Source: Penicillus capitatus
Lineage: Eukaryota; Plantae; Chlorophyta
Reading direction: 5' to 3'
DNA: 64,000 nucleotides
NCBI GenBank assembly: GCA_965649825.1
Contig: OZ287712.1
Location: 310,001-374,000 of the forward strand
Below are positions 1,564-63,906 of the stretch, piece after piece. The notes under the pieces are model-generated. The model saw only the letters and a list, made by a program, of their open reading frames with translations. It did not search any database and was not told the DNA's origin. Position 1 is the stretch's first letter. Each line of letters opens with the position of its first letter. The position numbers and the translations under genes were made by a program.

Positions 1564-2775
1564 ATGTCGTCAAATCAAGGCGTCGCCGCGTCCACAGCAG
1601 CCGACTTAGAAGTCGGTGGTCATGAAGACTATTCGTTCACTTTTTCCGAAGCGTCTTTAGCCACAGCCGGCAATTCTTTTTTCGTAGAGCCCTCTCCCCG
1701 AGAAGGCGAGACGTCGACGGACGACGTTAAAATCGCGTTAAAATTCCTCCTTACGAATGTCGCCGCGGGGATCGTTATTGGGAAGGCCGGAACAAACATA
1801 ACGCTTTTGCAGGAAGCATCTGGAGCACGCATCCAGCTCTCACGCAATAATGTCTTCTATCCAGGGACGGCAGAACGCGTTCTTCTGCTCACGGGCAGCG
1901 TTCGAAGCGTCCTGGTCGCGCTCTATCTTATCCTAGTCAAACTCACTGGGCGCACAAAATGGCAAGCAGCCAAGTTGGGAGATGGAAGCGGTGGCGAAGA
2001 GAACAGTTCAGATGTCGACGTCGAATCAGAGACCACCCAAGTTAAAATCGTGATGCCGGCTGCTGTGTGTGGAGCCATTATTGGACGTGGAGGTGAGACC
2101 GTGCGAGGATTTGCCGAAGATTCCGGAGCGAGCATTTCTGTGTCGCCTCAGGAACGCAGCACACGTCCCGATCGCATGGGCCCCGCCACGGATCGCATCG
2201 TTACCATTACAGGCGGCGTTCAACAGATTCTGCGCGCCGTGGCGCTGATTGTCACGACAGTGGCCGAGGATCCCAACTACGTGCGCAATGTGGGTCTATC
2301 TGTCAACTATGCCCCTCGTCCTTCTGTGGGCACTCCGAGTGGACTCATGATGAATTCGCCCCAAAGTGGACTCAACAGGCCTGCGCCGTTCGGCCAGAAT
2401 ACACCGACACCAAGTTCAGGCTCTTTTACGCAATCTTCTTTTCCTCAAGATCCCGCTGCACTGTTTGCCCAACCGCCTCATAATGTCCTTCAGAGAACGA
2501 GCCCTTCTCATCCTGGCCGTGTGGAGACGAAGCTCTCGGTGCCGAACGAACATGTGGGCGCGATCATCGGGAAGGGAGGCGAGATACTGGCACAGCTTCA
2601 GGATCTAGTGGGTGTGAAGGTGACCATCTCTGGTCGAGGAGAGTTCGAACCTGGTACTCGTAATCGCGTCGTATCCATCACAGGTCCCCCAGATGCCGTA
2701 AATATCGGTCAGATGTTGATCACACAGAAAGTCCATGAACGCATTGAGCAGCTGCAGCGTCAAGGAAGCATCTAG
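1564..2775 (+). CDS. BTR1: Triple-KH-domain RNA-binding protein, BTR1/NOVA family
   Basis: Single-exon 403-aa ORF with three KH domains and intact GxxG loops (IGKAG, IGRGG, IGKGG). KH1 GARIQLSRNNVFYPGTAERV and KH3 ISGRGEFEPGTRNRVVSITG match the BTR1/NOVA pattern. Confidence 0.88.
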   Translation: MSSNQGVAASTAADLEVGGHEDYSFTFSEASLATAGNSFFVEPSPREGETSTDDVKIALKFLLTNVAAGIVIGKAGTNITLLQEASGARIQLSRNNVFYPGTAERVLLLTGSVRSVLVALYLILVKLTGRTKWQAAKLGDGSGGEENSSDVDVESETTQVKIVMPAAVCGAIIGRGGETVRGFAEDSGASISVSPQERSTRPDRMGPATDRIVTITGGVQQILRAVALIVTTVAEDPNYVRNVGLSVNYAPRPSVGTPSGLMMNSPQSGLNRPAPFGQNTPTPSSGSFTQSSFPQDPAALFAQPPHNVLQRTSPSHPGRVETKLSVPNEHVGAIIGKGGEILAQLQDLVGVKVTISGRGEFEPGTRNRVVSITGPPDAVNIGQMLITQKVHERIEQLQRQGSI

Positions 2776-16500: not shown

Positions 16501-18265
16501 CCGCTCTGCCGACATGTGCCGTCTGGACTGGAACGCGTCTGGTTCGGGTTACGGTGAGATGACCTTCGCGTATTCACGGACATCGCACGCCAGCCTCGTC
16601 GTCTACGCGCGTCGCAAGACAGCGGCTACCCGTTTCCGACAGAACCGAGGATTCGCCGTCCCCTGCCTCCAAATAGCTGCGACGTGGTCTGAGAGAGGAC
16701 CGTTGTGCTCGGTTCACCGCTCCTTCGGTCATCGGATGACCATGGTCCACGAACTCCTGCGTACGTGCCACGCCTTCATTCGCGATCTTTCTCGTGTCAT
16801 TCGCATGGGAGATGCGCGTGTGGAGCGGGAGAAGGATCGGCGCGGCAAGACGATCGTTCTCGTCCGCGGAAAACGCGAGAACGCGCTGTCGCGCTGCTCG
16901 GAGTCCGTTGCTTCAGACAGCGGCATCATCGACCAGACGGACGGGTGACCGCGCCGACTGCCAAAAGGCGCTACGCAGACGCGGCGTCCGGACTCGGCCT
17001 GAGCAGACGGCCAGTCGTTCGCCCGCAAACCGGCGTTGTTAAAGGAGGGATCGCGGCAGAATTTCTGAGACTTGTCCATCCTTCTGGACGGATGAGTTTT
17101 TCGCCGACGCCGATTCTCCCGTCGAAGATGCGCCTGTCGCAGTGCAGCAGGCGCCACGGACAAGCTGGAAAGTGTCCGTTTCCTACGCGCCGTGTCGAAC
17201 GAACGCGCAGGTGACACGTCCGTCATCGGCGGCGTAGATCATCTTTTTTTCTAGGGTGTGTTTCTCGCTTGCACCTCTTTTTTGCCACCGCGGACAGCGA
17301 GAGAGCAGTCATTCGTCCGCGGCGCCTAAGCCATTCTCGGTAGCTGTGGCATCGGCGAGAAATGGCAGCAGGACACAGCGTCCTTGCGTCCGGACGGTCG
17401 GCCAAGTCCCCGTCGAGGAGGCTATTGGCCCCTCTTTGTCTCGCAGCGAACGTGGAAGGCGGTCGTCCGCGTTTCGCCTTCGCAGACAGACTGCCTCGGT
17501 TCGCGCTGGGAGAGAAATGGAGGCTAACCGTTCGGCACGTGCGCGCACCGCCAGATCAAGTCACATCGTGGCTGTTGCCGAATGCATCCTGAGAAAGCTC
17601 TCCATGCGACAGCAGCTGCTGGGTCACGGTCGACGGATACGACCGAATTGGCAAATGCGTTCGTCGGCAAACGAGGCACTGCCGAATTCGGACACGTCGC
17701 TTCTGGCATGCTGTCTGAATTCGGATCGCTAACTGTAGCTTCAAGGTATAAATTCCAGCAGAGTTCTCGACCATCGCCACTTCCCTTTACGCGTTTGTGC
17801 ATCTGCCTCTCTCAGGTTCTCCGGACTTCGTCTCGAACAACATGTCTGCCAACGCAACTCTGTTCTTCTTCGCCGCTCTCCTCTGCCTCTATGCAGCAAG
17901 ATCCATTCCGCTGCGGCAATTCTCCGTGGTGACTGTCTGGTGTTTGGCAGGCGACTGCTTACCGCCCGACCGCCGAGTCGGTCGTCGACGAGAATGGCCG
18001 CGTCGTCGGAACTCTGGTCCTGAAAACGAACCTCGCCAATCAAGCCAGTACGGATCAGCAGCTACCTGACAAAACCTCGTGCTCACTGTGGCGTTTGTCG
18101 TATGTGAAGTCGGCGGCGAGAAGTACGACGCCCTCCCTGAATATCAAGAGTATTCGTATTCGAAAAACACCTGCATCGAATCGATGTGCATCGAAAAACG
18201 TTACTTGCCGAATCTATTTAGTCGAGTATCGAACGCGACTGTCTGTATGTAGATTACGATGCATG

Positions 18266-18270
18266 GGACT
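18266..18270 (+). repeat. Target-site duplication GGACT (second copy at 24315-24319)
   Basis: gcatgGGACT|TGTTGG ... CCAACA|GGACTtctg. Confidence 0.95.
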
Positions 18271-19102
18271 TGTTGGTCCGCTGACTGATCAAGCGGAGAA
18301 GTCTTAGGCGACGGTTTGAAGGCCGTCAGGACTGGTCGCTTGAACGTGAGGAAGCAGTCAGCGACGGTTAAGAGAGCGCTCGAGAGGGTCAAGAGATGAC
18401 CAACGTAGGGTGAAAGACGAGTCTGCAAGAAGACGCGAAGGTCGTGAATTGCCAAATGTCCAGAGTTCTAGTCTGGGTGACGTGTATTCTCGGAATGATC
18501 GGAAAACGTCACTGTCATCTGTGAACACTTAGACACTCGCCAGAAATCTCAGAAACCGGTGGAATTCGATGATTGCTGAGGTCGAGGCGACGTCGAGTTT
18601 AACGCTACAAATGACCTGCGAGGTGCAAGCGACGTCGAGTTCTGAGCCGAAAGTCCGAGGCGACGAACGATGCTGTAACCCTGAGTGATCAGCCTGGATT
18701 ACAGAAAAGGCGAGGAAAGCGTGGCAGTCAGTTGACGTGACGAAATGGACAGTCGACGCGCTGAGAAGGAGACGCAGCCAGTGGTAAAAGCCTGAAGATG
18801 CAGCGTCGCAGTGAGGCGAAGACATGAAATCAAGGTGGCGCCAAAAGGCGACGTGAGACGCGAATTTAGTGTGTGTAACTAACAAAAACGCAAATGAAAC
18901 GGAGAACATGGGCATATAAAATAAAAACTTTAGGGGCAAGTTTGGGTTTAAAGCTTTCGGTGTTGCGTGCATATTTTGTCGATCGAGTCGCTTTGCGTTG
19001 CTGACGACTACAAGCGTAATCCCGCTGCCGTGCTGACGATTTTGGCCTGTTTTTCAGTGCCAATTCTGCCCCATCGTCGCATAGTACTGCAGAAAACCAA
19101 CA
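18271..19102 (+). repeat. 5' LTR (832 bp)
   Basis: Starts TGTTGG and ends CCAACA. Direct repeat of 23482-24314. Contains a duplicated GCGACGTCGAGTT (18587, 18629) and TATAAA/AATAAA at 18915-18925. Confidence 0.97.
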
Positions 19103-19120
19103 TGGTTTCGGAGCGAGCCA
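19103..19120 (+). promoter_or_regulatory. Primer-binding site (TGGTTTCGGAGCGAGCCA)
   Basis: Directly follows the 5' LTR and begins TGG. It resembles the tRNA-iMet-type PBS TGGTATC(A/G)GAGC with one mismatch. Confidence 0.75.
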
Positions 19121-19122
19121 AG

Positions 19123-20640
19123 ATGGCTCATGTGTGCCTTTGTTTCTGGCTATGTTTTGCACTGGTCTCATGCGTGAGAACGAGAAGTGGTACCTCGACA
19201 GAACCCAATCTGTCGCAGGAAAATCGCGAGTTGAGAGAGCAACTCGAACTGTTAAAAGAAGAGATTCAGCAGCTCAGACAGCCTAAGACTAGTTCTGAGG
19301 CCACTGGATCGAAATGGTTTCGTTGGGCATGGTCATTGGTGACAAGGACTAAAGTTCCACCGCTCGAATTTCCGGAGGACGATCAGGACGAGGTGGTTCC
19401 AGAGGAGGACGCAGGGATGGATGAGGCAGAAACGTCGTGTGATGGCGTATTATCCTGCTCTGCATCACTCTGTAGTCAGATCTGGAGGACTTGTCGTTTC
19501 TTTTTCGCCCAAATCTGGATACTGATGACGCGACCGACATTCTGGGTGTCACAGCTGAATCAGTCGTGCGTTGAACTAGTGTCTGTGTGGAAACAGGATG
19601 CGGCGCAAGTGGTTGGTTTGATGTTAGCCATTGCGTTTATCGCGTATCTTGTCAATGCTATTGCGTCCTTGACGCTCATGATATGGGAAAAGCGTCTTGG
19701 GTCTGTATTTCAGCGTTTCTCGAAAAAGTTGTCGTTTTTGGTCCTTATACTCAAGTTCAAGAACCTATTGGCTAGAGTAGCGAGATCGCATCACCAAGTT
19801 GAGAACGAGGTGAAGAGAAGGGTGCAAGAAGAGTTGGCCAAGGGTGGTCAGGCTCACGCTGTTGCAGCTGTCAATCACGACGCTAATCAGCGAGCTGTAC
19901 CGCGGAATTCAACTATGCTTTGTTTCAAATGTGGCAAGCCAGGTCATATCTCGAGAAATTGTCCTACCTGGAGAAACAAGTTTCAAGCTCAAGTTGAGGC
20001 GCCACGTGCGCAAGAGCAGTTTGTGATGCCTGCGCCAAGGCAACGAAGAGATCAACCGGTTCAAGTGCAGTCGGACGTAGCTATTTCGCCTGAAGTCGTG
20101 AGAGCGAGCCAGCTTAAGCTGCCGACTCAGACTCAGGTTGGAACTGTAAATAATGTCGAACAAGAAGAGACGGGAACTCAATTGAAGGCTCCTGCGTTTT
20201 TGGGACCAAAGGGTGTAAAATGCGTTTTGATCATTGATACGGGGAGTTCGGTGAACGTGATGCCTGAAGTGCGTGTCAAGAAGATGGGCCTGAGTGTCAA
20301 TGCGGATTTGGCGCCAGGGCAGACTCATCTTAGAGCGTTCAACGGAGGGATCGCGAGGGTCTTGGGTGTCTTGAATTTGAGGGTGAAGCTAGGAGCATGG
20401 GAGGTTGAGATACCTTTCTATGTTGCAAGAGGTGTGTCGCATGTCATTTTGGGAGTGCCGGGATTGAGTGCAATGGCCGTCACGATAGATCCGGCAAATG
20501 GCAGGCTTGTCAAGGGCGCGGATGCATTGCTGTGTGACGGATATCAGGATCATCCGCCAGCTTGCCACTTGGTTGAGGTTGCCGGATACGACATGCGAGA
20601 TGCACAACCCTCAAGTTCGCACCCAAATGTGTCCCAGTGA
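19123..20640 (+). CDS. gag-pro: Retrotransposon ORF1: signal peptide, coiled coil, TM helix, CCHC zinc knuckle, aspartic protease (atypical Gag-Pro)
   Basis: MAHVCLCFWLCFALVSC (19123; alternative ATG at 19102); heptads ENRELREQLELLKEEIQQL; TM VVGLMLAIAFIAYLVNAIASLTLMIW (19609-19686); CFKCGKPGHISRNC (19921-19962); LIIDTGSSVNVM (DTG at 20236-20244). Confidence 0.92.
   Translation: MAHVCLCFWLCFALVSCVRTRSGTSTEPNLSQENRELREQLELLKEEIQQLRQPKTSSEATGSKWFRWAWSLVTRTKVPPLEFPEDDQDEVVPEEDAGMDEAETSCDGVLSCSASLCSQIWRTCRFFFAQIWILMTRPTFWVSQLNQSCVELVSVWKQDAAQVVGLMLAIAFIAYLVNAIASLTLMIWEKRLGSVFQRFSKKLSFLVLILKFKNLLARVARSHHQVENEVKRRVQEELAKGGQAHAVAAVNHDANQRAVPRNSTMLCFKCGKPGHISRNCPTWRNKFQAQVEAPRAQEQFVMPAPRQRRDQPVQVQSDVAISPEVVRASQLKLPTQTQVGTVNNVEQEETGTQLKAPAFLGPKGVKCVLIIDTGSSVNVMPEVRVKKMGLSVNADLAPGQTHLRAFNGGIARVLGVLNLRVKLGAWEVEIPFYVARGVSHVILGVPGLSAMAVTIDPANGRLVKGADALLCDGYQDHPPACHLVEVAGYDMRDAQPSSSHPNVSQ
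20622..20628 (+). promoter_or_regulatory. Probable -1 ribosomal frameshift heptamer C CCA AAT
   Basis: X XXY YYZ pattern in the ORF1 frame. The Pol frame is open from 20577 (after TGA 20574-20576), is -1 relative to ORF1, and has no ATG before 20823. Confidence 0.65.
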
Positions 20641-23471
20641 TCACCCAGTTAAAGCACATTCCTGGTTTTTCTTTGAAGTTCAAGTCTGGAAGGACATCGC
20701 TTTGTTGTGGATCGCCACTCGTCATTGGCCCAAGTGACGTAGTGACGCGGAAGTTGCCTTTTTGTTTAGAATGTGTTTCTCATTGTTCTGTGTTCCCAAA
20801 GTTGTCGAGTCCGGGTCTTTTGATGTCGTTTTGGCTGTCAGACAAGGGTGAAATCTCTGTTCGCATTTGGAATAGTGGACGTGTCGCGCAATTTGTCGCG
20901 CACAAGACAATCGTCCTGGAAGTTTATTCATGTGTGTGTCCTGTGTTGCTTTCCAAGTTTGATGGCGCTGATAAGCCACTCTGTGCACCTGTTTCTGCGT
21001 TGTGCATGATGAAAGACAAGTTCTATTGGAGGGATCGTTTCCCGAGACTGTTTGACGATACGCTCATGTTTGGAACTGTAAAGGATTTAGAAGTTTCCTA
21101 CTCGGAGATCCATTGGAAAACGTCGTATTACGACATTCCGCTAACGAATCGTGGCTTGGAATACGAAGTGGGGGAAGTGAGCCCCGCAGAAGCGAGCGCC
21201 TATTTGGACACGCTGCTTCAAAAGGGGGTGATTCGTGAGATGGCCCCTGGAGAGAAAGGATTTTTCTCACCTGCAATGTTTCTGAGGAAGAAAGATGGCA
21301 GGGTGAGAAAAGTGGTTGATTTCAGGCTTTTGAATTCGTATTCGCATGCTTGGATAGTGCCGATGAGCGGAGGCACAATCGCACGGATAAGAAGGATACC
21401 GAGTGATTGGAAATACTTTACTAAGGTTGATTTGGAATCAGGATTTTCCAACGTGGGTGTCGATGAAAGGCTTCAAGCTTTATTTGCGTTTTCGTATCGT
21501 GGGAGATCGTTCACGTACAGAACGATACCGCAAGGTTGGTCGAGTGCTAGCGGTATCTTCGATAGTCGCATGAGTTCGATCTTTTCCTCGATTGGGGCTG
21601 TATCGTATATTGATGATGTCTTAGTTGGAGGGGATACTCCAGAGTCGCATGACAAGGCGCTACATGACCTGCTTGCGACACTTGTTTTTTATGGCTTTAG
21701 AGTCAATTTGCGGAAGCTTGAGATTGGTGCTTCCCAAGTCAATTTTCTAGGATTTGATCTAAGACAAGGTCACTTTTCGCTTCGCAGCTACATTGACCGA
21801 CAGTCAGCGGAGTTACCGTCGGCCAATACTTTGACTCAGCTGCGAAGGATGATAGGCATTTTTAACTTTGCACGGCCTTTCGTATCAAGAATGGACTCGA
21901 TGATACTGCCTTTGTTGGATGACCTGAAGAAAGCTCCATCTGATCGCATGCCTTTATTAGAACTGCAGGAGTGTTGTCGCGAGATTTGGAGACACGTCCT
22001 GACAGTCAATTTGGAACTGTGCATGTTCGATCAATGGACGGACTCAGAATGGACGCTTCTAGTGGACTGGAGTACCACTGGAATGGGATACATCTTGCTC
22101 AAGGGAGACCTCGAGCAGAGATGCGTGGTTGGGCTCGGATCAAAGAAAATGGGAGAGCGTGTCTCGTCTCATTTGGGAGAATTGTTGGCTGTAAAGTGGT
22201 CTTTGGAACAGGTCAAAGTCTTGACCTCTGGTCAGCGAGTTCGCTTGCTAAGTGACTCGGCATCGGTTGTCGCTCGTCTCCTAAGGGATTCGAAGCAGGA
22301 AGATGTGGTTGATGTCAGACAAGCTCGATTGTTTGCTTGGATTTGGGCAAACTTTCCGCTACAGTCAAGGCTTTTGGTTGAACATCGGCCGGGATCGTAT
22401 AACGAAATTGCTGACGCGTTATCGCGATGGCAAGACTCTGAAGTGGTGGGTGCAATTGAGCAGGCTCAGGATGAGCCGAAAATACCGGAAGATGCGATTG
22501 AAATAATGAAAGCCGTTCATGAAGAGGGACATTACAATGCCATTGCTACGTTCCTGCACTTGAAAAGAGAAGGACACTCATGGAAGCGCATGAGAGCCAT
22601 GGTCGATGAAGTCGTTCGGAGTTGTGAGCACTGTCAGATGTACGGGCGAGAGTGCCTGTCGCATGAATTTAGTGCGAGGATTTGTACCTCTGTTGGCGAA
22701 ATGGTCTACGTTGATTTTGCCGGTCCCTACCCACTACGTTACGGAAGAGGCAGGAGGATGCTCTTCGTAATAGTAGATGGCTACAGCCGACTCGTCAAGA
22801 TCAAGGTTGTTACCGCGGCCACCTCGGAGGTGATAATGGAAGGACTTTCTGAGTGGATCGACTTCGTTGGACCGATGACTGCAGTCCAAGCTGACAACGC
22901 GGCTGCATTCCATGCGGTGATCCTTAAGAACTGGTTGCAGGAAAGACAGATCCGTATCCAATATACTGGTGCGTACAGACCGCACAGCAATGGTCCCGTC
23001 GAACGAATGATCGGCAATATCAAAACGAGATTACGCAAGCTCATGCATCAGTCGCAGAGGAGCTGGGTGTCTCTGATTCCGGAGGTGGAACAAGCGATCA
23101 ACAATTCCATTAACTCCACCACTCAATTCACTCCAAACGAGCTTGCATTTGGAAGATGTCGAGACGGCCAGATGGTCGAGAATTCTGTCCGAGATCAGTG
23201 GCGAGAGCAGGCGCTACGTCGTCTGAGAAGTAGACGAAAAGGAAAACATCGTACTGTTGTTCGCATCCGATATCCGATCGAGATTGGTAAAGAAGTCCTT
23301 TGGAAGGTGCCAGGTCCAAAGCGTAATCAATTCTGGTCGCCAATCTGGGAAGGTCCATATCGGGTGATAAAGAAGGACAGTGCGATGTTCAGAGACATTC
23401 AATTGGTCGATGGAGAACGGACGCGTAGGCATGTTCACGTGAGAAGCTTGAGACCGTTCTTTCGGAGTTGA
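20625..23471 (+). CDS. pol: Retrotransposon Pol: degenerate dUTPase-like segment, RT, RNase H, integrase
   Basis: RT: SPAMFLRKKDGRVRKVVDFRLLN, KVDLESGF, PQGW, YIDD (21606-21617). RNase H: VDWS...GELLAV...LSDS...NEIADALSR. Integrase: H-x3-H...C-x2-C, YVDFAGP, QADNAAAF, NGPVERMIGNIK, and WEGPYRV (GPY/F). No stop codons. Confidence 0.97.
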   Translation, partial: KCVPVITQLKHIPGFSLKFKSGRTSLCCGSPLVIGPSDVVTRKLPFCLECVSHCSVFPKLSSPGLLMSFWLSDKGEISVRIWNSGRVAQFVAHKTIVLEVYSCVCPVLLSKFDGADKPLCAPVSALCMMKDKFYWRDRFPRLFDDTLMFGTVKDLEVSYSEIHWKTSYYDIPLTNRGLEYEVGEVSPAEASAYLDTLLQKGVIREMAPGEKGFFSPAMFLRKKDGRVRKVVDFRLLNSYSHAWIVPMSGGTIARIRRIPSDWKYFTKVDLESGFSNVGVDERLQALFAFSYRGRSFTYRTIPQGWSSASGIFDSRMSSIFSSIGAVSYIDDVLVGGDTPESHDKALHDLLATLVFYGFRVNLRKLEIGASQVNFLGFDLRQGHFSLRSYIDRQSAELPSANTLTQLRRMIGIFNFARPFVSRMDSMILPLLDDLKKAPSDRMPLLELQECCREIWRHVLTVNLELCMFDQWTDSEWTLLVDWSTTGMGYILLKGDLEQRCVVGLGSKKMGERVSSHLGELLAVKWSLEQVKVLTSGQRVRLLSDSASVVARLLRDSKQEDVVDVRQARLFAWIWANFPLQSRLLVEHRPGSYNEIADALSRWQDSEVVGAIEQAQDEPKIPEDAIEIMKAVHEEGHYNAIATFLHLKREGHSWKRMRAMVDEVVRSCEHCQMYGRECLSHEFSARICTSVGEMVYVDFAGPYPLRYGRGRRMLFVIVDGYSRLVKIKVVTAATSEVIMEGLSEWIDFVGPMTAVQADNAAAFHAVILKNWLQERQIRIQYTGAYRPHSNGPVERMIGNIKTRLRKLMHQSQRSWVSLIPEVEQAINNSINSTTQFTPNELAFGRCRDGQMVENSVRDQWREQALRRLRSRRKGKHRTVVRIRYPIEIGKEVLWKVPGPKRNQFWSPIWEGPYRVIKKDSAMFRDIQLVDGERTRRHVHVRSLRPFFRS

Positions 23472-23481
23472 CAGGGAAGCG
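23470..23481 (+). promoter_or_regulatory. Polypurine tract (gacAGGGAAGcg)
   Basis: Purine run immediately 5' of the 3' LTR, starting within the pol stop codon. Confidence 0.7.
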
Positions 23482-24314
23482 TGTTGGTCCGCTGACTGAT
23501 CAAGCGGAGAAGTCTTAGGCGACGGTTTGAAGGCCGTCAGGACTGGTCGCTTGAACGTGAGGAAGCAGTCAGCGACGGTTAAGAGAGCGCTCGAGAGGGT
23601 CAAGAGATGACCAACGTAGGGTGAAAGACGAGTCTGCAAGAAGACGCGAAGGTCGTGAATTGCCAAATGTCCAGAGTTCTAGTCTGGGTGACGTGTATTC
23701 TCGGAATGATCGGAAAACGTCACTGTCATCTGTGAACACTTAGACACTCGCCAGAAATCTCAGAAACCGGTGGAATTCGATGATTGCTGAGGTCGAGGCG
23801 ACGTCGAGTTTAACGCTACAAATGACCTGCGAGGTGCAAGCGACGTCGAGTTCTGAGCCGAAAGTCCGAGGCGACGAACGATGCTGTAACCCTGAGTGAT
23901 CAGCCTGGATTACAGAAAAGGCGAGGAAAGCGTGGCAGTCAGTTGACGTGACGAAATGGACAGTCGACGCGCTGAGAAGGAGACGCAGCCAGTGGTAAAA
24001 GCCTGAAGATGCAGCGTCGCAGTGAGGCGAAGACATGAAATCAAGGTGGCGCCAAAAGGCGACGTGAGACGCGAATTTAGTGTGTGTAACTAACAAAAAC
24101 GCAAATGAAACGGAGAACATGGGCATATAAAATAAAAACTTTAGGGGCAAGTTTGGGTTTAAAGCTTTCGGTGTTGCGTGCATATTTTGTCGATCGAGTC
24201 GCTTTGCGTTGCTGACGACTACAAGCGTAATCCCGCTGCCGTGCTGACGATTTTGGCCTGTTTTTTCAGTGCCAATTCTGCCCCATCGTCGCATAGTACT
24301 GCAGAAAACCAACA
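23482..24314 (+). repeat. 3' LTR (833 bp)
   Basis: Identical to the 5' LTR by eye except for a T6 run (vs T5) near 24261-24266. Confidence 0.97.
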
Positions 24315-25187
24315 GGACTTCTGCTCTGATAAGTATTATTGCAAAGACAAATTCCTTTTGTGCGAGGGATATTACGGCCATCCTGACGAAATGCCCGCAA
24401 AAGGATGGGAGAGAGGCCTCTGCTGAAAACGCGTCGCCTAACGGACGAGAAGCCGAACACATTCTTTCCGGGCATGAGTTCTGGAGATTTTGCATGACCC
24501 TCTGGAACAATCCGGTTACCTGTTAATGTTCGATCTTTAAGCATCGCAGCCGTTTTTTGAACTCGCTTTCACGACGCGCGTTTCCTGCGACGATCACGAA
24601 AAGCGGTCGACGGCGTCTTCATGGCCACGATCGCCAGGCGGTGTGCTTGCTGCCTGCCGTACCCGAAAAACGCCGCATTCGCGCGTTTTCTGAGCACGAC
24701 GGCCAACTGCTCCGGGCAGAGCGGCAGACGCGAATCCTCTCTCGGCGAGACGGACAGGACCCTCGTTCTCGTCGCACACTTCTCACGTCAAGCTCGGCGT
24801 GCTTTCTTACGTCGCGGCAGATGAGGGGAATCCGAACTCGGCATGCCGATCGGCGAAAGAAAGACACGCGCGGCTCGCGGAGAAGTACGAACCAAGGCGC
24901 TAGAGGCGCGGAGGCCTGAGCTGCGAACAACTGCAGGGACTCGACTTGGGAATCCTGTCCGCCGAGACACACGCCTCGAATGAGAAGGTGCGTCTGGCGC
25001 GTTTGCGAACCTTCACGCCGGAAGGCCACTCACTGCTTTCGGCGCATCAGCCTTCGTCATTCTTCCCGTTCGCCGGTCGAGGAAGAACTGGGCCATGAGG
25101 CGTCGTTTTCAGAATGGGGACTCGGTCGGTCGGACACACGATTACGGGGCAGCACCAGGTTTACAGACGGATCACTCTTAAAACCAG

Positions 25188-37025: not shown

Positions 37026-38620
37026 GCTTCGTTTCTGGCCAACCTTGCCGAAATGTTGTAAATTGTAACACAAGGTGTCCATTTACGCGTGTCATTAAGA
37101 AACGTACGTAGATTGTTCGGCAGAAGACAGTTGCGCCGCAGTCCTTCATGGCTGAAAACGCCGTCAACGAATTCTCTCAGCAGGTGGTTTCGGAATGGAG
37201 AGCGAACCACCTCAGCGAAAGCCTCATCTTCTCCCCACTCTCCATCGCCATGTGCTTTCTGCTCGTCTATCATGGCGCTGCCGGGAAGACCAAGTTAGAA
37301 ATCGAGGACCTCTTCGGATTTGACGTACGCTTTCCGTTATACAGCAACGACGTCTTCATGATTATGCGTTTAGGACAAGCGCGAGAAGCGTCGCCTTTCA
37401 GACAAGATGGACGACTACAGCAGACACTCCGCCGCCAAGATGGCAAATCGCGTGTACGTGGAAGAGGAGTTGAAAATCAAAAATCGCTTTGTCCGGGACG
37501 TCGGTCGTGACAACCTCGAGCACGTCGATTTCGTTCACGGATACGATGCCGTTGGACGCGACATCAATGCATGGGTGGCAGAAAAAACGGAGGGGATGAT
37601 TCCAGAGATCATTTCACCTGGCGTACTTGATGCTAACACGGCCTTGGTGGCTGTCAACGCCCTCTACTTCAAGGACAAGTGGCAGACACAATTCTCCCCA
37701 CAGGACACTGCCGACGGCATCTTTCACGGGGTTGGTGGAGACCAGACCGTGCCTTTCATGATGCTTCGCCACAAGGAAATCCTTCTAAAAAGGGTTTGGG
37801 CATTGGACAGTATGCTTTTCAAACTGCCGTACGACGGAGGCGAGTTTTCGATGTACGTGTTGTTACCCGACAAGAAAGATGGATGGAAGAAAGCGGAGAA
37901 GAACCTTGCATCCGAGATAGATTCTCTCTTCCGGGGTGGATTCTATTCAAGCTTCGTGGGGATGTTCAAAATCCCCAAGTGGGAATTGGAGCTGTCGCTC
38001 GAAGGACTGGAAGAAATTCTGCACAGTCTGGGATTGACTACCGCGTTCGGCGAAGATGCAAACTTCACAGGCATCATAGACTATCCTCCCCTTGCCATAT
38101 CGAATGTTCTTCACAAGGCCAAGATCGTTGTGGATGAAGAGGTGGGTATGAGAGTTGACTATTCTTTGCTTCTAATGGCGTGTGTCGTTGAAGGGCACAA
38201 AAGCGGCAGCGTCAACAGGGTTACGCGCTGTACCGCTGACGATGCCGCCTGACTACTATGTGGATCGCCCCTTTATCTACTTTATCGTCGACGAGAAGGA
38301 TGCGACGATTCTCTTCCAAGGGACACAGACCCGCTTCCCGACAACACAGACCAGTATCCCGAAAACACGTGTTGGTCGAAGGAAAAGGCACAGAAGAAGA
38401 GTCCATCCGCCAACATCTCCGCCGTTTGTTCCAGTTTTCTAAATTCTGCCGCTGTCTCTCAGTAAGACAGATCGCATAGATGAGTGACTGACTCTCTATT
38501 CGGAGGTCGAACTCTCGGGAAACATCAGATTGAGGAATGAACGTCTGGCAAACCTGTTTGGTATCGTTGCCCGTTGAACGAACAGCCGAATGATGCTTGT
38601 GTCAAGTCATCTTTGTCTTG
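37026..38620 (+). repeat. About 1.6 kb inverted segmental duplication (partner about 62315-63906)
   Basis: Promoter-side sequence, exons, introns and 3' flank all align to the reverse complement of 62315-63906. Boundaries are approximate. Confidence 0.9.
37148..38442 (+). CDS. Inhibitory-type serpin, paralog A (predicted P1 Leu)
   Basis: SLIFSPLSI, INAWVAEKTEGMI, VNALYFKDKW, SMYVLLPD, IPKWEL, NVLHKAKIVVDEE|GTKAAASTG, YYVDRPFIYFI. Introns 37325-37373 and 38142-38193. Confidence 0.93.
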
Positions 38621-62314: not shown

Positions 62315-63906
62315 CATACCAAACAAAGATGACTAGACATGTGCTTCATTCAACTGGCCATTCAACAGCCAACGATACCAAACAGGTTTGCCAGACGTTC
62401 ATTCCTCAATCTGCTGTTTCCCGAGAGTTCGACCGCCGAATAGAGGATCACTCATCCATGCGATCTGTCTTACTGGGAGACAGCGGCAAAATCTAGAAAA
62501 CTGGAACAAACGGCGGAGATGTTGGCGGATGGACTCTTCTTCTGTGCCCTTTTCTTTGACCAGCACGTGTTTTCGGGATACTGGTCTGTGTTGTCGGGAA
62601 GCGGGTCTGTGTCCCCTGGAAGAGAATCATCGCATCCTTCTCGTCGACGATAAAGTAGATAAAGGGGCGATCCACGTAATACTCGCGCAGCATCATTCTC
62701 GCTGCGATGCGTAACCCTGTTGACGCTGCCGCTTCTGTGCCCTTCATTACACGCCATTAGAAGGAAACAATAGTCTACTCTCATGCCCACCTCTTCATCC
62801 ACAACGATCTTGGCTTTGTGAAGAACATTCGATATGGCAAGGGGAGGATAGTTTGTGATGCCTTGGAAGTTTGCATCTTCGCCGAACGCGGTAGTCAATC
62901 CCAGACTGTGCAGAATTTCTTCCAGTCCTTCGAGCGACAGCTCCAATTCCCACTTGGGGAGTTTAAATACCCCCGCCTCGATCGAAGCGAATCCACCCTG
63001 GAAGAGAGAATCTATCTCGGATGCAAGGTTCTTCTCCGCTTTCTTCCATCCATCTTTCTTGTCGGGTAACAACACGTACATCGAGAAATTTCCCCCTTTG
63101 TACGGCAATTTGAAAAGAATACTATCCAATGACGGCACTCTTTTTAGAAGGATGTACTTGTGGCGAAGCATCATGAAAGGCACGGTCTGGTCTCCACCAA
63201 CTCCGTGAAAGATGCCGTCGGCAGTGTCCTGCGGGGAGAATTGTGTCTGCCACTTGTCCTTGAAGTAGAGGGCGTTGACAGCCACCAAGGCCGTGTTAGC
63301 ATCAAGTACGCCAGGCGGAATGATCTCTGGTATCATCCCCTCCGTTTTTTCTGCCACCCATGCATTGATGTCGCGTCCAACGGCATCGTATCCGTGAACG
63401 AAATCGACGTGCTCGAGGTTGTCACGACCGACGTCCCGGACAAAGCGGTTCTTGATTTTCAACTCCTCTTCCACGTACACGCGATTTGCCATCTTGGCGG
63501 CGGAGTGTCTGCTGTAGTCGTCCATCTTGTCTGAAAGGCGACGCTTCTCGCGCTTGTCCTAAACGCATAATCATGAAGACGTCGTTGCTGTATAACGGAA
63601 AGCGTACGTCAAATCCGAAGAGGTCCTCGATTTCTAACTTGGTCTTCCCGGCAGCGCCATGATAGACGAGCAGAAAGCACATGGCGATGGAGAGTGGGGA
63701 GAAGATGAGGCTTTCGCTGAGGTGGTTCGCTCTCCATTCCGAAACCACCTGCTGAGAGAATTCGTTGACGGCGTTTTCAGCCATAAAGGATTGCGGCGCA
63801 ACTGTCTTCTGCCGAACAATCTACGTACGTTTCTTAATGACACGCGTAAATGGACACCTTGTGTTACAATTTACCACGTTTCGGCAAAGTTGGCCAGAAA
63901 CGAAGC
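62315..63906 (-). repeat. Second copy of the serpin-containing inverted duplication
   Basis: Reverse complement aligns with 37026-38620. Confidence 0.9.
62493..63784 (-). CDS. Inhibitory-type serpin, paralog B (predicted P1 Arg)
   Basis: Inverted paralog of 37148-38442. Introns 63559-63607 and 62742-62790. RCL EE|GTEAAASTGLRIAARMMLREYYVDRPF. Confidence 0.93.

Follow-up and report, generated by a model that had tools for sequence, protein, structure and literature searches.

A Ty3/gypsy-like LTR retrotransposon from Penicillus capitatus with a predicted membrane-anchored nucleocapsid-protease polyprotein in place of Gag

To our knowledge, all long terminal repeat (LTR) retrotransposons and retroviruses described so far are thought to carry out reverse transcription inside a Gag capsid shell, and the membrane proteins of these elements are encoded by separate env-like or accessory open reading frames (ORFs). 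We describe here an LTR retrotransposon in a stretch of 64,000 nucleotides from the green alga Penicillus capitatus (assembly GCA_965649825.1, contig OZ287712.1, positions 310,001 to 374,000 of the forward strand). This whole stretch is called the window, and coordinates are positions in it unless another locus is named. The complete element occupies 18271-24314, and its first gene, ORF1, has the features of a membrane protein upstream of a nucleocapsid (NC) zinc knuckle and a protease (PR). We propose, with a probability of about 0.6, that this is an autonomous, recently inserted, deep-branching element of the Ty3/gypsy-retrovirus type whose first gene codes for an integral membrane polyprotein and not for a capsid (CA). 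What would be new, judged from sequence, is a variant of LTR retrotransposon with a presumably membrane-anchored NC-protease in place of Gag. The full-text literature that we searched contained no description of a retroelement with a membrane-spanning protein as its only product in the Gag position.

The closest described systems are the Ty3/gypsy elements (Metaviridae), and a placement near them rests on Pfam domain order, matches to PDB entries, and pairwise identity. The likeness lies in the TG..CA LTRs, the 5-bp duplication, the primer-binding site (PBS) at the LTR edge and the polypurine tract (PPT), in the CCHC nucleocapsid upstream of PR, in the order PR-reverse transcriptase (RT)-RNase H-integrase (IN), and in a Gag-Pol that would be made by a -1 frameshift. 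Moreover, Ty3 is the best solved-structure match of the Pol (E 1.3e-27), with foamy virus close behind. The difference is that no capsid domain was detected and that a signal-like peptide, a putative ectodomain, and a predicted transmembrane (TM) segment are in its place. In addition, no Pol outside the family is more than 26% identical to that of the family, the family IN is closer to foamy virus IN than to Ty3 IN, and ORF1 begins at the LTR/PBS junction.

Murine intracisternal A-particles (IAP) have no env, their Gag is targeted to the endoplasmic reticulum (ER), and their particles bud into ER cisternae; they keep matrix (MA), CA, and NC and form capsid shells. Our element would share with IAP the combination of an env-less retroelement and a Gag taken co-translationally to the ER membrane, whereas IAP Gag keeps its capsid and is not a membrane-spanning protein with an ectodomain. 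A passage of PMC3945221 cites the signal recognition particle (SRP) as carrying IAP Gag to the ER membrane. In Ty1, SRP takes the RNA that codes for Gag to the ER during translation and thereby nucleates assembly sites (PMC3945221), and the same logic of localizing the element RNA in cis would apply here, but Ty1 Gag is without a recognizable signal sequence or TM segment and, being soluble, goes back to the cytosol and builds capsids. The glycoGag of murine leukemia virus (MLV), gPr80, is a Gag-derived integral membrane protein (PMC12530543). It is of type II, its Gag part being exposed on the outside, it is made as an accessory beside a normal cytosolic Gag, and it keeps CA, whereas in our family no CA was found, the orientation is predicted to be reversed, and no other ORF could supply a normal Gag. 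The cytosolic tail of bunyavirus Gn carries CCHC-type zinc fingers, binds ribonucleoprotein or RNA, and stands in for the matrix protein that the virus lacks (PMC4014721). Here the likeness is one of working principle only, namely, a cytosolic zinc finger that gathers RNA at a membrane; there is no homology, the nucleoprotein is separate, the zinc-finger fold is another one, and neither protease nor RT is attached. The FAST-like sORF2 of the MDG1 group in Drosophila is a small transmembrane protein of an env-less LTR retrotransposon (PMC11952523), but it is a separate short accessory ORF alongside normal capsids that neither is joined to NC-PR nor takes the place of Gag. Unlike retroviral and errantiviral Env, the predicted membrane module of the family is the N-terminus of ORF1 and not a separate ORF 3' of pol.

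The first-pass annotation of this DNA, made without database searches, had placed an ORF at 19123-20640 and had described it as a type I membrane protein in the position of Gag, with a signal peptide, a coiled coil, an acidic linker, helices with Cys and Trp, a TM segment, a knuckle, and a protease. The ORF is there as given and all of these features are present in the sequence. An in-frame ATG at 19102, 21 nt upstream of 19123, is the first ATG past the TATA-like box of the LTR, and ORF1 residues are numbered from it. The features of ORF1 are as follows, with helices and predicted local distance difference test (pLDDT) values from an AlphaFold2 (AF2) model.

19102..20640, plus strand: ORF1, NC-protease polyprotein with a predicted membrane anchor, in place of Gag; 512 residues from the first ATG, 505 from 19123
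19102..19176, plus strand: signal-peptide-like segment, residues 1-25; basic n-region, h-region of 15-16 residues, small residues V-S-C, then the conserved R-T-R
19210..19287, plus strand: leucine-zipper-type heptad repeat, residues 37-62; L44, L48, L51, I55, L58; AF2 helix 37-58
19309..19365, plus strand: W-x2-W-x-W ... T-R-x-K-x-P-P motif, residues 70-88, the most conserved motif of the family; the window version ends T-R-T-K-V-P-P
19366..19437, plus strand: acidic, probably disordered linker, residues 89-112; pLDDT <50 for residues 82-112
19438..19596, plus strand: CX5C pair (residues 113-119) and two helices (residues 116-165) with a conserved P-x2-W turn
19600..19686, plus strand: predicted TM helix, residues 167-195, with a conserved Asn, N185, inside
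19687..19917, plus strand: basic juxtamembrane stretch and long helix, residues 196-272, presumably cytosolic; AF2 helices 200-209 and 211-264, pLDDT 80-86
19921..19965, plus strand: CCHC zinc knuckle (nucleocapsid), residues 274-288; Pfam zf-CCHC, E 2.5e-7
20212..20460, plus strand: retropepsin, residues 371-453; Pfam Asp_protease_2, E 2.9e-6; active-site DTG at 20236-20244

Membrane features were judged by Kyte-Doolittle hydropathy, by h-region length, by the residues at -3/-1, and by the charges of the flanks. The signal-like segment reaches a Kyte-Doolittle maximum of 2.69 over 11 residues (KD11) and of 1.91 over 19 residues (KD19, at residues 7-25), and such a segment was found in all seven family members that have the N-terminus. 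Across the family the h-regions are 9-20 residues long, mostly 12-17, and in most members small residues are at -3/-1 (V-S-C, T-V-A, A-G-A, V-D-S, A-E-G, and V-D-A), followed by the conserved basic R-[TS]-R. The predicted TM segment is an uncharged 29-mer (AAQVV...LMIW) that contains the 26 residues noted in the first pass and has a KD19 maximum of 2.42 at residues 170-188. The flank before it is neutral and the flank after it is strongly basic, with the basic EKRLGSVFQRFSKK from residue 196 right behind the segment and then more basic residues. In shuffled sequences of the same composition the N-terminal and the central hydrophobic segment co-occurred in only 3-14 of 5000 shuffles per sequence (≤0.3%). 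By its hydropathy and its conserved flanks ORF1 looks like a type I membrane protein that is followed by NC and PR, although the charge after its first segment is atypical. The AF2 model, built from an alignment of eight sequences, is all-helical with helices at 4-25, 37-58, 68-81, 116-143, 145-165, 167-195, 200-209, and 211-264, and the pair at 116-143 and 145-165 has pLDDT values of 79-88. In the heptad stretch L44, L51, and L58 are invariant in the family alignment A2; the stretch gave only weak matches to bZIP_1 or leucine-zipper-type Pfam families, which we regard as noise.

This arrangement of modules is shared, at homologous positions, by at least five lineages, which come from four metagenome samples and across which Pol identity falls to 41% and identity of the ORF1 N-terminus to ~20%. 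The principal members besides the window element are listed with their identities.

L002, ENA ERZ26696514: ORF1 69%, Pol 84%; open ORFs; first 300 nt of the LTRs 100% identical
L001, ENA ERZ26696514: ORF1 32%, Pol 54%; open ORFs; 198-nt LTRs 100% identical; duplication AGGGT; same PBS
L004 (P0007), JGI 3300015263: Pol 41%; near-complete element on a 4.5-kb contig
L006 (P0006), ENA ERZ26696514, 4.1-Mb contig: Pol 43-57%; degraded
L007, ENA ERZ25074695 (same sample as the window): degraded

L006 is broken by one frame change in ORF1 and by at least two frame changes and one insertion of ~1.3 kb in ORF2, and in L007 ORF1 is split in two ORFs and no intact ORF2 was called. Further members are the fragments P0005, P0008, and P0009 and the solo ORF P0010 (L005). 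A scan of JGI metagenome contigs gave no further copies and a second word-index search added little. Within the columns that each one reaches, L002, L001, P0006/L006, L004/P0007, P0008, P0009, and P0010 all have the order h-region, R-[TS]-R, heptads, W-x2-W-x-W...P-P, acidic stretch, Cys pair, P-x2-W turn, and hydrophobic span with its Asn, after which come the basic flank, the helix, the knuckle or knuckles (one in the window, two in L004), and the protease. All eight sequences compared share W75, W77, P87, and C119, and C113 is kept in most members. The TM Asn is kept in all six sequences that reach its column, and the span is hydrophobic at the same alignment position in the window, L002, L001, P0006, and L004.

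Judged by the ratio of nonsynonymous to synonymous substitution rates (dN/dS), the N-terminal module is under purifying selection. Between the window and L002 the ratio was 0.13 for the N-terminal 262 residues (Nei-Gojobori) and, by segment, 0.035 for the signal-like segment, 0.01 for the Trp motif, 0.06 for the hydrophobic span, and 0.086 for the protease, while the acidic linker was the least constrained part with 0.40; all these ratios are rough because dS is ~1.2-1.5, near saturation. Whether an ORF1 with signal peptide and TM segment is conserved had been put forward as a check in the first pass, and an ORF1 with both predicted segments is indeed kept, under selection, in at least five lineages. 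The N-terminus diverges faster than Pol, with 30% against 54% identity to L001. Three copies, those of the window, L001, and L002, have both ORF1 and ORF2 open and identical or nearly identical LTRs. Since three young intact copies exist, we argue that the design is mobile.

No gag, PNMA, or Arc family was found in Pfam across eight members even at E ≤10, where there was coiled-coil noise only, and sequence and profile searches of the PDB with the N-terminal profile gave no match. With the AF2 model as query, Foldseek returned nothing below an E of 1 from either the PDB or BFVD (predicted viral structures), and when hhalign was used to compare the family profile with the capsid-type Gag of the closest relatives outside the family, the probability was 0.2%. 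On the other hand, the controls were positive. The nearest outside relatives by Pol (24-26% identity) carry an N-terminal PNMA-type Gag domain, and a profile of only two sequences of their Gag region matched the Drosophila Arc1 capsid in the PDB with E 0.009. The AF2 helices of the family are long (29-54 residues), unlike those of CA. A capsid fold in ORF1 was rejected on the negative Pfam, PDB profile, AF2 and Foldseek, and hhalign results taken with these controls, which agrees with the first-pass view of the element as capsid-less.

When 1.84 billion cluster representatives were searched with the profile, eight proteins were returned, namely, seven retroelement ORF1 proteins or fragments and the solo homologue P0010; all belong to the family, and no cellular protein family was among them. 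A near-identical Pol with a normal Gag, which the first-pass annotation had named as the observation that would make this element a one-off chimera, was looked for among 5.8 billion proteins and none was found, the Pols outside the family being at most 26% identical.

The remaining features of the element are given below.

18266..18270, plus strand: left copy of the target-site duplication, GGACT; the identical 5-mer is beside both LTRs
18271..19102, plus strand: 5' LTR, 832 nt, TG...CA (blastn of LTR against LTR)
18915-18927: TATA-like box inside the 5' LTR
19103..19120, plus strand: PBS, TGGTTTCGGAGCG..., which begins right after the terminal CA of the LTR and overlaps the first ORF1 codons
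20574..23471, plus strand: ORF2 (Pol), open, in the -1 frame relative to ORF1
20622..20628, plus strand: slippery heptamer C_CCA_AAT, in the phase of ORF1 and 10 nt short of its stop codon; putative -1 frameshift site
21285-21758: RT (Pfam)
22041-22430: RNase H (Pfam)
22500-22643: IN zinc domain (Pfam)
22695-23060: IN core (Pfam)
23470..23481, plus strand: PPT, GACAGGGAAGCG, adjoining the 3' LTR
23482..24314, plus strand: 3' LTR, 833 nt
24315..24319, plus strand: right copy of the target-site duplication, GGACT

The two LTRs are 99.88% identical over 833 columns with a single indel as the sole difference (blastn), and the window element is young, intact, and recently inserted. The PBS starts with TGG at 19103 and the same 13 nt are present in L001, where ACAGGGAAGCG also precedes the 3' LTR. 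ARAGORN and Rfam found no primer tRNA among the family loci examined, and the window has no tRNA or Rfam match. At L001 7613-7685, ~120 nt upstream of the 5' LTR, ARAGORN made a tRNA-like call with an odd anticodon loop; it was unconfirmed by Rfam and could be a degenerate tRNA gene or a short interspersed nuclear element near the insertion site. The internal 4.4 kb (19103-23481) is filled by ORF1 and ORF2. This region has no third conserved ORF and no separate env 3' of pol, and no minor ORF is common to the window, L001, and L004. Thus, there is no space for a separate capsid or env ORF, as had been noted in the first pass, and no trace of one.

No leader separates the coding sequence of ORF1 from the LTR. 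The start codon consists of the last A of the LTR (..CA) and the TG of the PBS (TGG; window 19100-19120), and because it spans the LTR/PBS junction the PBS encodes the n-region of the signal-like peptide, which reads MVSER in the window and L001 (7999-8020) and HGETDV in L004 (125-170) and P0008. LTR lengths vary more than fourfold in the family, from 832 nt in the window and ~880 nt in L002 to 198 nt in L001 (7804-8001) and ~168 nt in L006 (6839-7005), and the window LTR has short internal direct repeats around 18574-18641. The GC skew on the coding strand of the element is strongly positive (0.15-0.19, window 18001-24000) and is ~0 in the flanking host DNA.

Besides Ty3 Gag-Pol, the PDB matches of ORF2 were foamy virus PR-RT (4e-25) and foamy virus IN (1.3e-21). 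The integrase, including its C-terminal part (22500-23460), matches foamy virus IN, and the Ty3 polyprotein chain was matched over RT-RNase H only. The foamy virus IN match hints at a lineage position between Metaviridae and retroviruses. The N-terminal ~110 residues of ORF2 (window 20637-20970), between protease and RT, are conserved in four lineages and have no Pfam match, and the AF2 model of residues 1-110 is beta-rich with a pLDDT of 39. A capsid hidden in this region was considered and rejected; the region is too short and its very low-confidence, beta-rich model is of the wrong class. Heptamers in phase before the ORF1 stop were found in all four full-length lineages (CCCAAAC in L001, CCCAAAT in L002, and AAAAAAG in L004, in addition to that of the window), so that Pol is most likely produced as an ORF1-ORF2 fusion by -1 frameshifting.

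We infer for ORF1 a type I topology in which the signal peptide would be cleaved, residues ~26-165 would lie outside, and NC-PR-Pol would be cytosolic. This is suggested by the length of the h-regions, the small residues at -3/-1, the charges flanking the second span, the conserved Cys pair, and the knuckle, which needs cytosolic RNA. In the mechanism that we propose, the signal peptide would direct the chain to the ER while it is being translated, and the element's own mRNA would be carried along. The ~140 residues with the leucine zipper, the invariant Trp motif, the CX5C pair, and the helical hairpin would be lumenal or outer, and a single TM helix with the conserved Asn would anchor the chain. 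On the cytosolic side would be the basic helical linker, the CCHC knuckle, and the protease and, after the -1 frameshift, also RT-RNase H-integrase. The protein would oligomerize through the zipper, the TM Asn, and the cytosolic helix and so collect RNA, RT, and IN at one patch or invagination of the membrane, which would take over the job of the Gag lattice, and the protease would then release the enzymes. A bolder form of this proposal, which we hold only tentatively and consider doubtful, is a retroelement lineage without any capsid, in which one membrane-spanning protein would set an oligomerizing outer domain against NC, PR, and RT-IN, and reverse transcription would take place in membrane invaginations or vesicles. 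Among retroelements, these would be the equivalent of the membrane compartments in which positive-strand RNA viruses replicate. If capsid-free in this way, the element could possibly form a minimal enveloped particle with Gag and Env as one protein.

Several observations weigh against the membrane polyprotein proposal. Behind the first hydrophobic segment the sequence is at least as basic as in front of it, which is atypical for a cleaved signal peptide, and therefore other topologies, such as an uncleaved anchor, are possible. N-glycosylation sequons in the predicted outer domain are no commoner than chance. The AF2 model is of low confidence (pLDDT 66.6; predicted template modeling score, pTM, 0.30), and therefore the missing CA fold is no proof and a very divergent capsid is possible. 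There is no stable stem 3' of the heptamer, the minimum free energy there (z +0.68) being no better than that of shuffles in an analysis of structures other than pseudoknots. How cDNA would be delivered to the nucleus from a membrane-tethered complex is unexplained. Finally, integrase and RT pieces of a different LTR element, 26-34% identical to the family Pol, are located beside L006 (L006 6043-6583 and 14290-14646, both minus strand); the host therefore holds other retroelements and help in trans is possible.

The most conservative alternative is that the first 265 residues are a very divergent ordinary soluble Gag whose hydrophobic helices are buried in the fold or the lattice and never meet a membrane. 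The region has an all-alpha structure and about the length of the part of Gag ahead of NC, the AF2 model with its pTM of 0.30 is too weak to exclude this, and the N-terminus outpaces Pol in divergence as Gag does; Gag evolves fast and is often missed by hidden Markov models. However, both the uncharged 29-mer and the N-terminal h-region keep their hydrophobicity in spite of sequence divergence, whereas the capsid-type Gag N-termini of the nearest outside relatives have a KD19 maximum of just 0.7-0.9. Moreover, the same kinds of search that gave no CA match here find the Arc capsid from two sequences, and the predicted helices are far longer than CA helices. We therefore regard a soluble Gag as improbable. 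Somewhat less so, though still unlikely, is another topology, in which the first segment is an uncleaved N-terminal anchor and the second a re-entrant hairpin or in-plane anchor, so that a Gag-like region stays cytosolic on the membrane surface; anchor and basic patch would then play the role of the myristate and basic patch of retroviral MA. The R-[TS]-R cluster, which makes the flank after the first segment at least as positive as the N-terminal one, and the Asn mid-way in the 29-residue second segment would fit such an arrangement, and the proline-rich motif after the Trp motif would be within reach of cytosolic partners. Against it, h-regions of mostly 12-17 residues and small residues at -3/-1 are like those of a signal peptide and not of an anchor, the second segment with its neutral and then strongly basic flanks is as expected of a spanning helix with N-out and C-in, and the conserved CX5C pair suits an oxidizing compartment.

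The order of signal peptide, heptads, Trp motif, short Cys loop, helical hairpin, TM helix, and basic tail also calls to mind a Gag and Env in one, that is, an outer domain acting as a small fusogen or attachment module (class I-like or FAST-like) on capsid-less enveloped vesicles that pass between cells. Small transmembrane fusogen-like proteins exist in MDG1-group retrotransposons (PMC11952523), and the element recurs in four samples. But neither an Env or fusion family nor such a fold was found by Pfam at E ≤10, by a profile search of the PDB, or by Foldseek in the PDB and BFVD. A receptor-binding subunit is missing, the predicted ectodomain has just ~140 residues, and there is no sign of horizontal transfer, though none was searched for. 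The reading of the ectodomain as a class I fusion protein or Env was accordingly set aside and is kept as a rival of low probability, about on a par with a soluble Gag. The least probable of all, in our view, is the alternative raised in the first pass, a non-autonomous chimera that captured a host membrane-protein exon and has its capsid supplied by another element. Fragments of other LTR elements are indeed nearby in the same genome, and P0010 is a homologue of the N-terminal module that stands alone without NC, PR, or Pol. Nevertheless, at least five lineages, whose Pol identity is as low as 41%, keep the module under purifying selection, three of the copies are young and intact, and host-exon capture was rejected when the search of 1.84 billion representatives yielded members of the family and no cellular homologue. 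In addition, because NC and PR are in the same frame behind the predicted anchor, it is the element's own RNA-binding part that would be bound to the membrane. Thus, the first-pass interpretation is supported in part, namely, in the conserved predicted membrane protein in place of a capsid, and the one-off chimera that borrows a capsid in trans is rejected.

Some observations concern the surroundings of the family members. P0010 (L005 1438-2250) is a solo ORF of 270 residues with the signal-like segment, Trp motif, CX5C, P-x2-W turn, and TM helix with its Asn; no knuckle, protease, or Pol follows it, each frame of the next 900 nt has 14-15 stops, and an A_deamin gene lies next to it. P0010 is a relic or, alternatively, a domesticated copy. 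The L002 copy lies within a tandem array of a 157-bp satellite with at least 56 units that are ~90% alike (L002 1-7100 and 13200-17461), and this array may be a centromere-like or heterochromatic target. In the window, the host genes include serpin ORFs (Pfam E ~1e-51 to 1e-53) that are 25 kb apart on opposite strands, at 37407-38252 (plus) and 62470-63525 (minus), and a three-KH-domain protein at 1564-2775 (plus) that is only distantly like Nova/PCBP. The host DNA of the window has a GC content of ~53% and long exons.

The family is a deep, almost unsampled branch of the Ty3/gypsy-retrovirus group. If ORF1 is a membrane polyprotein without a capsid, then an evidently mobile family would show that the capsid is not obligatory. 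It would then offer a natural test case for the parallel that has long been discussed between the retroviral core and the membrane-bound compartments in which RNA viruses replicate, and it would bear on the origin of enveloped retroviruses.

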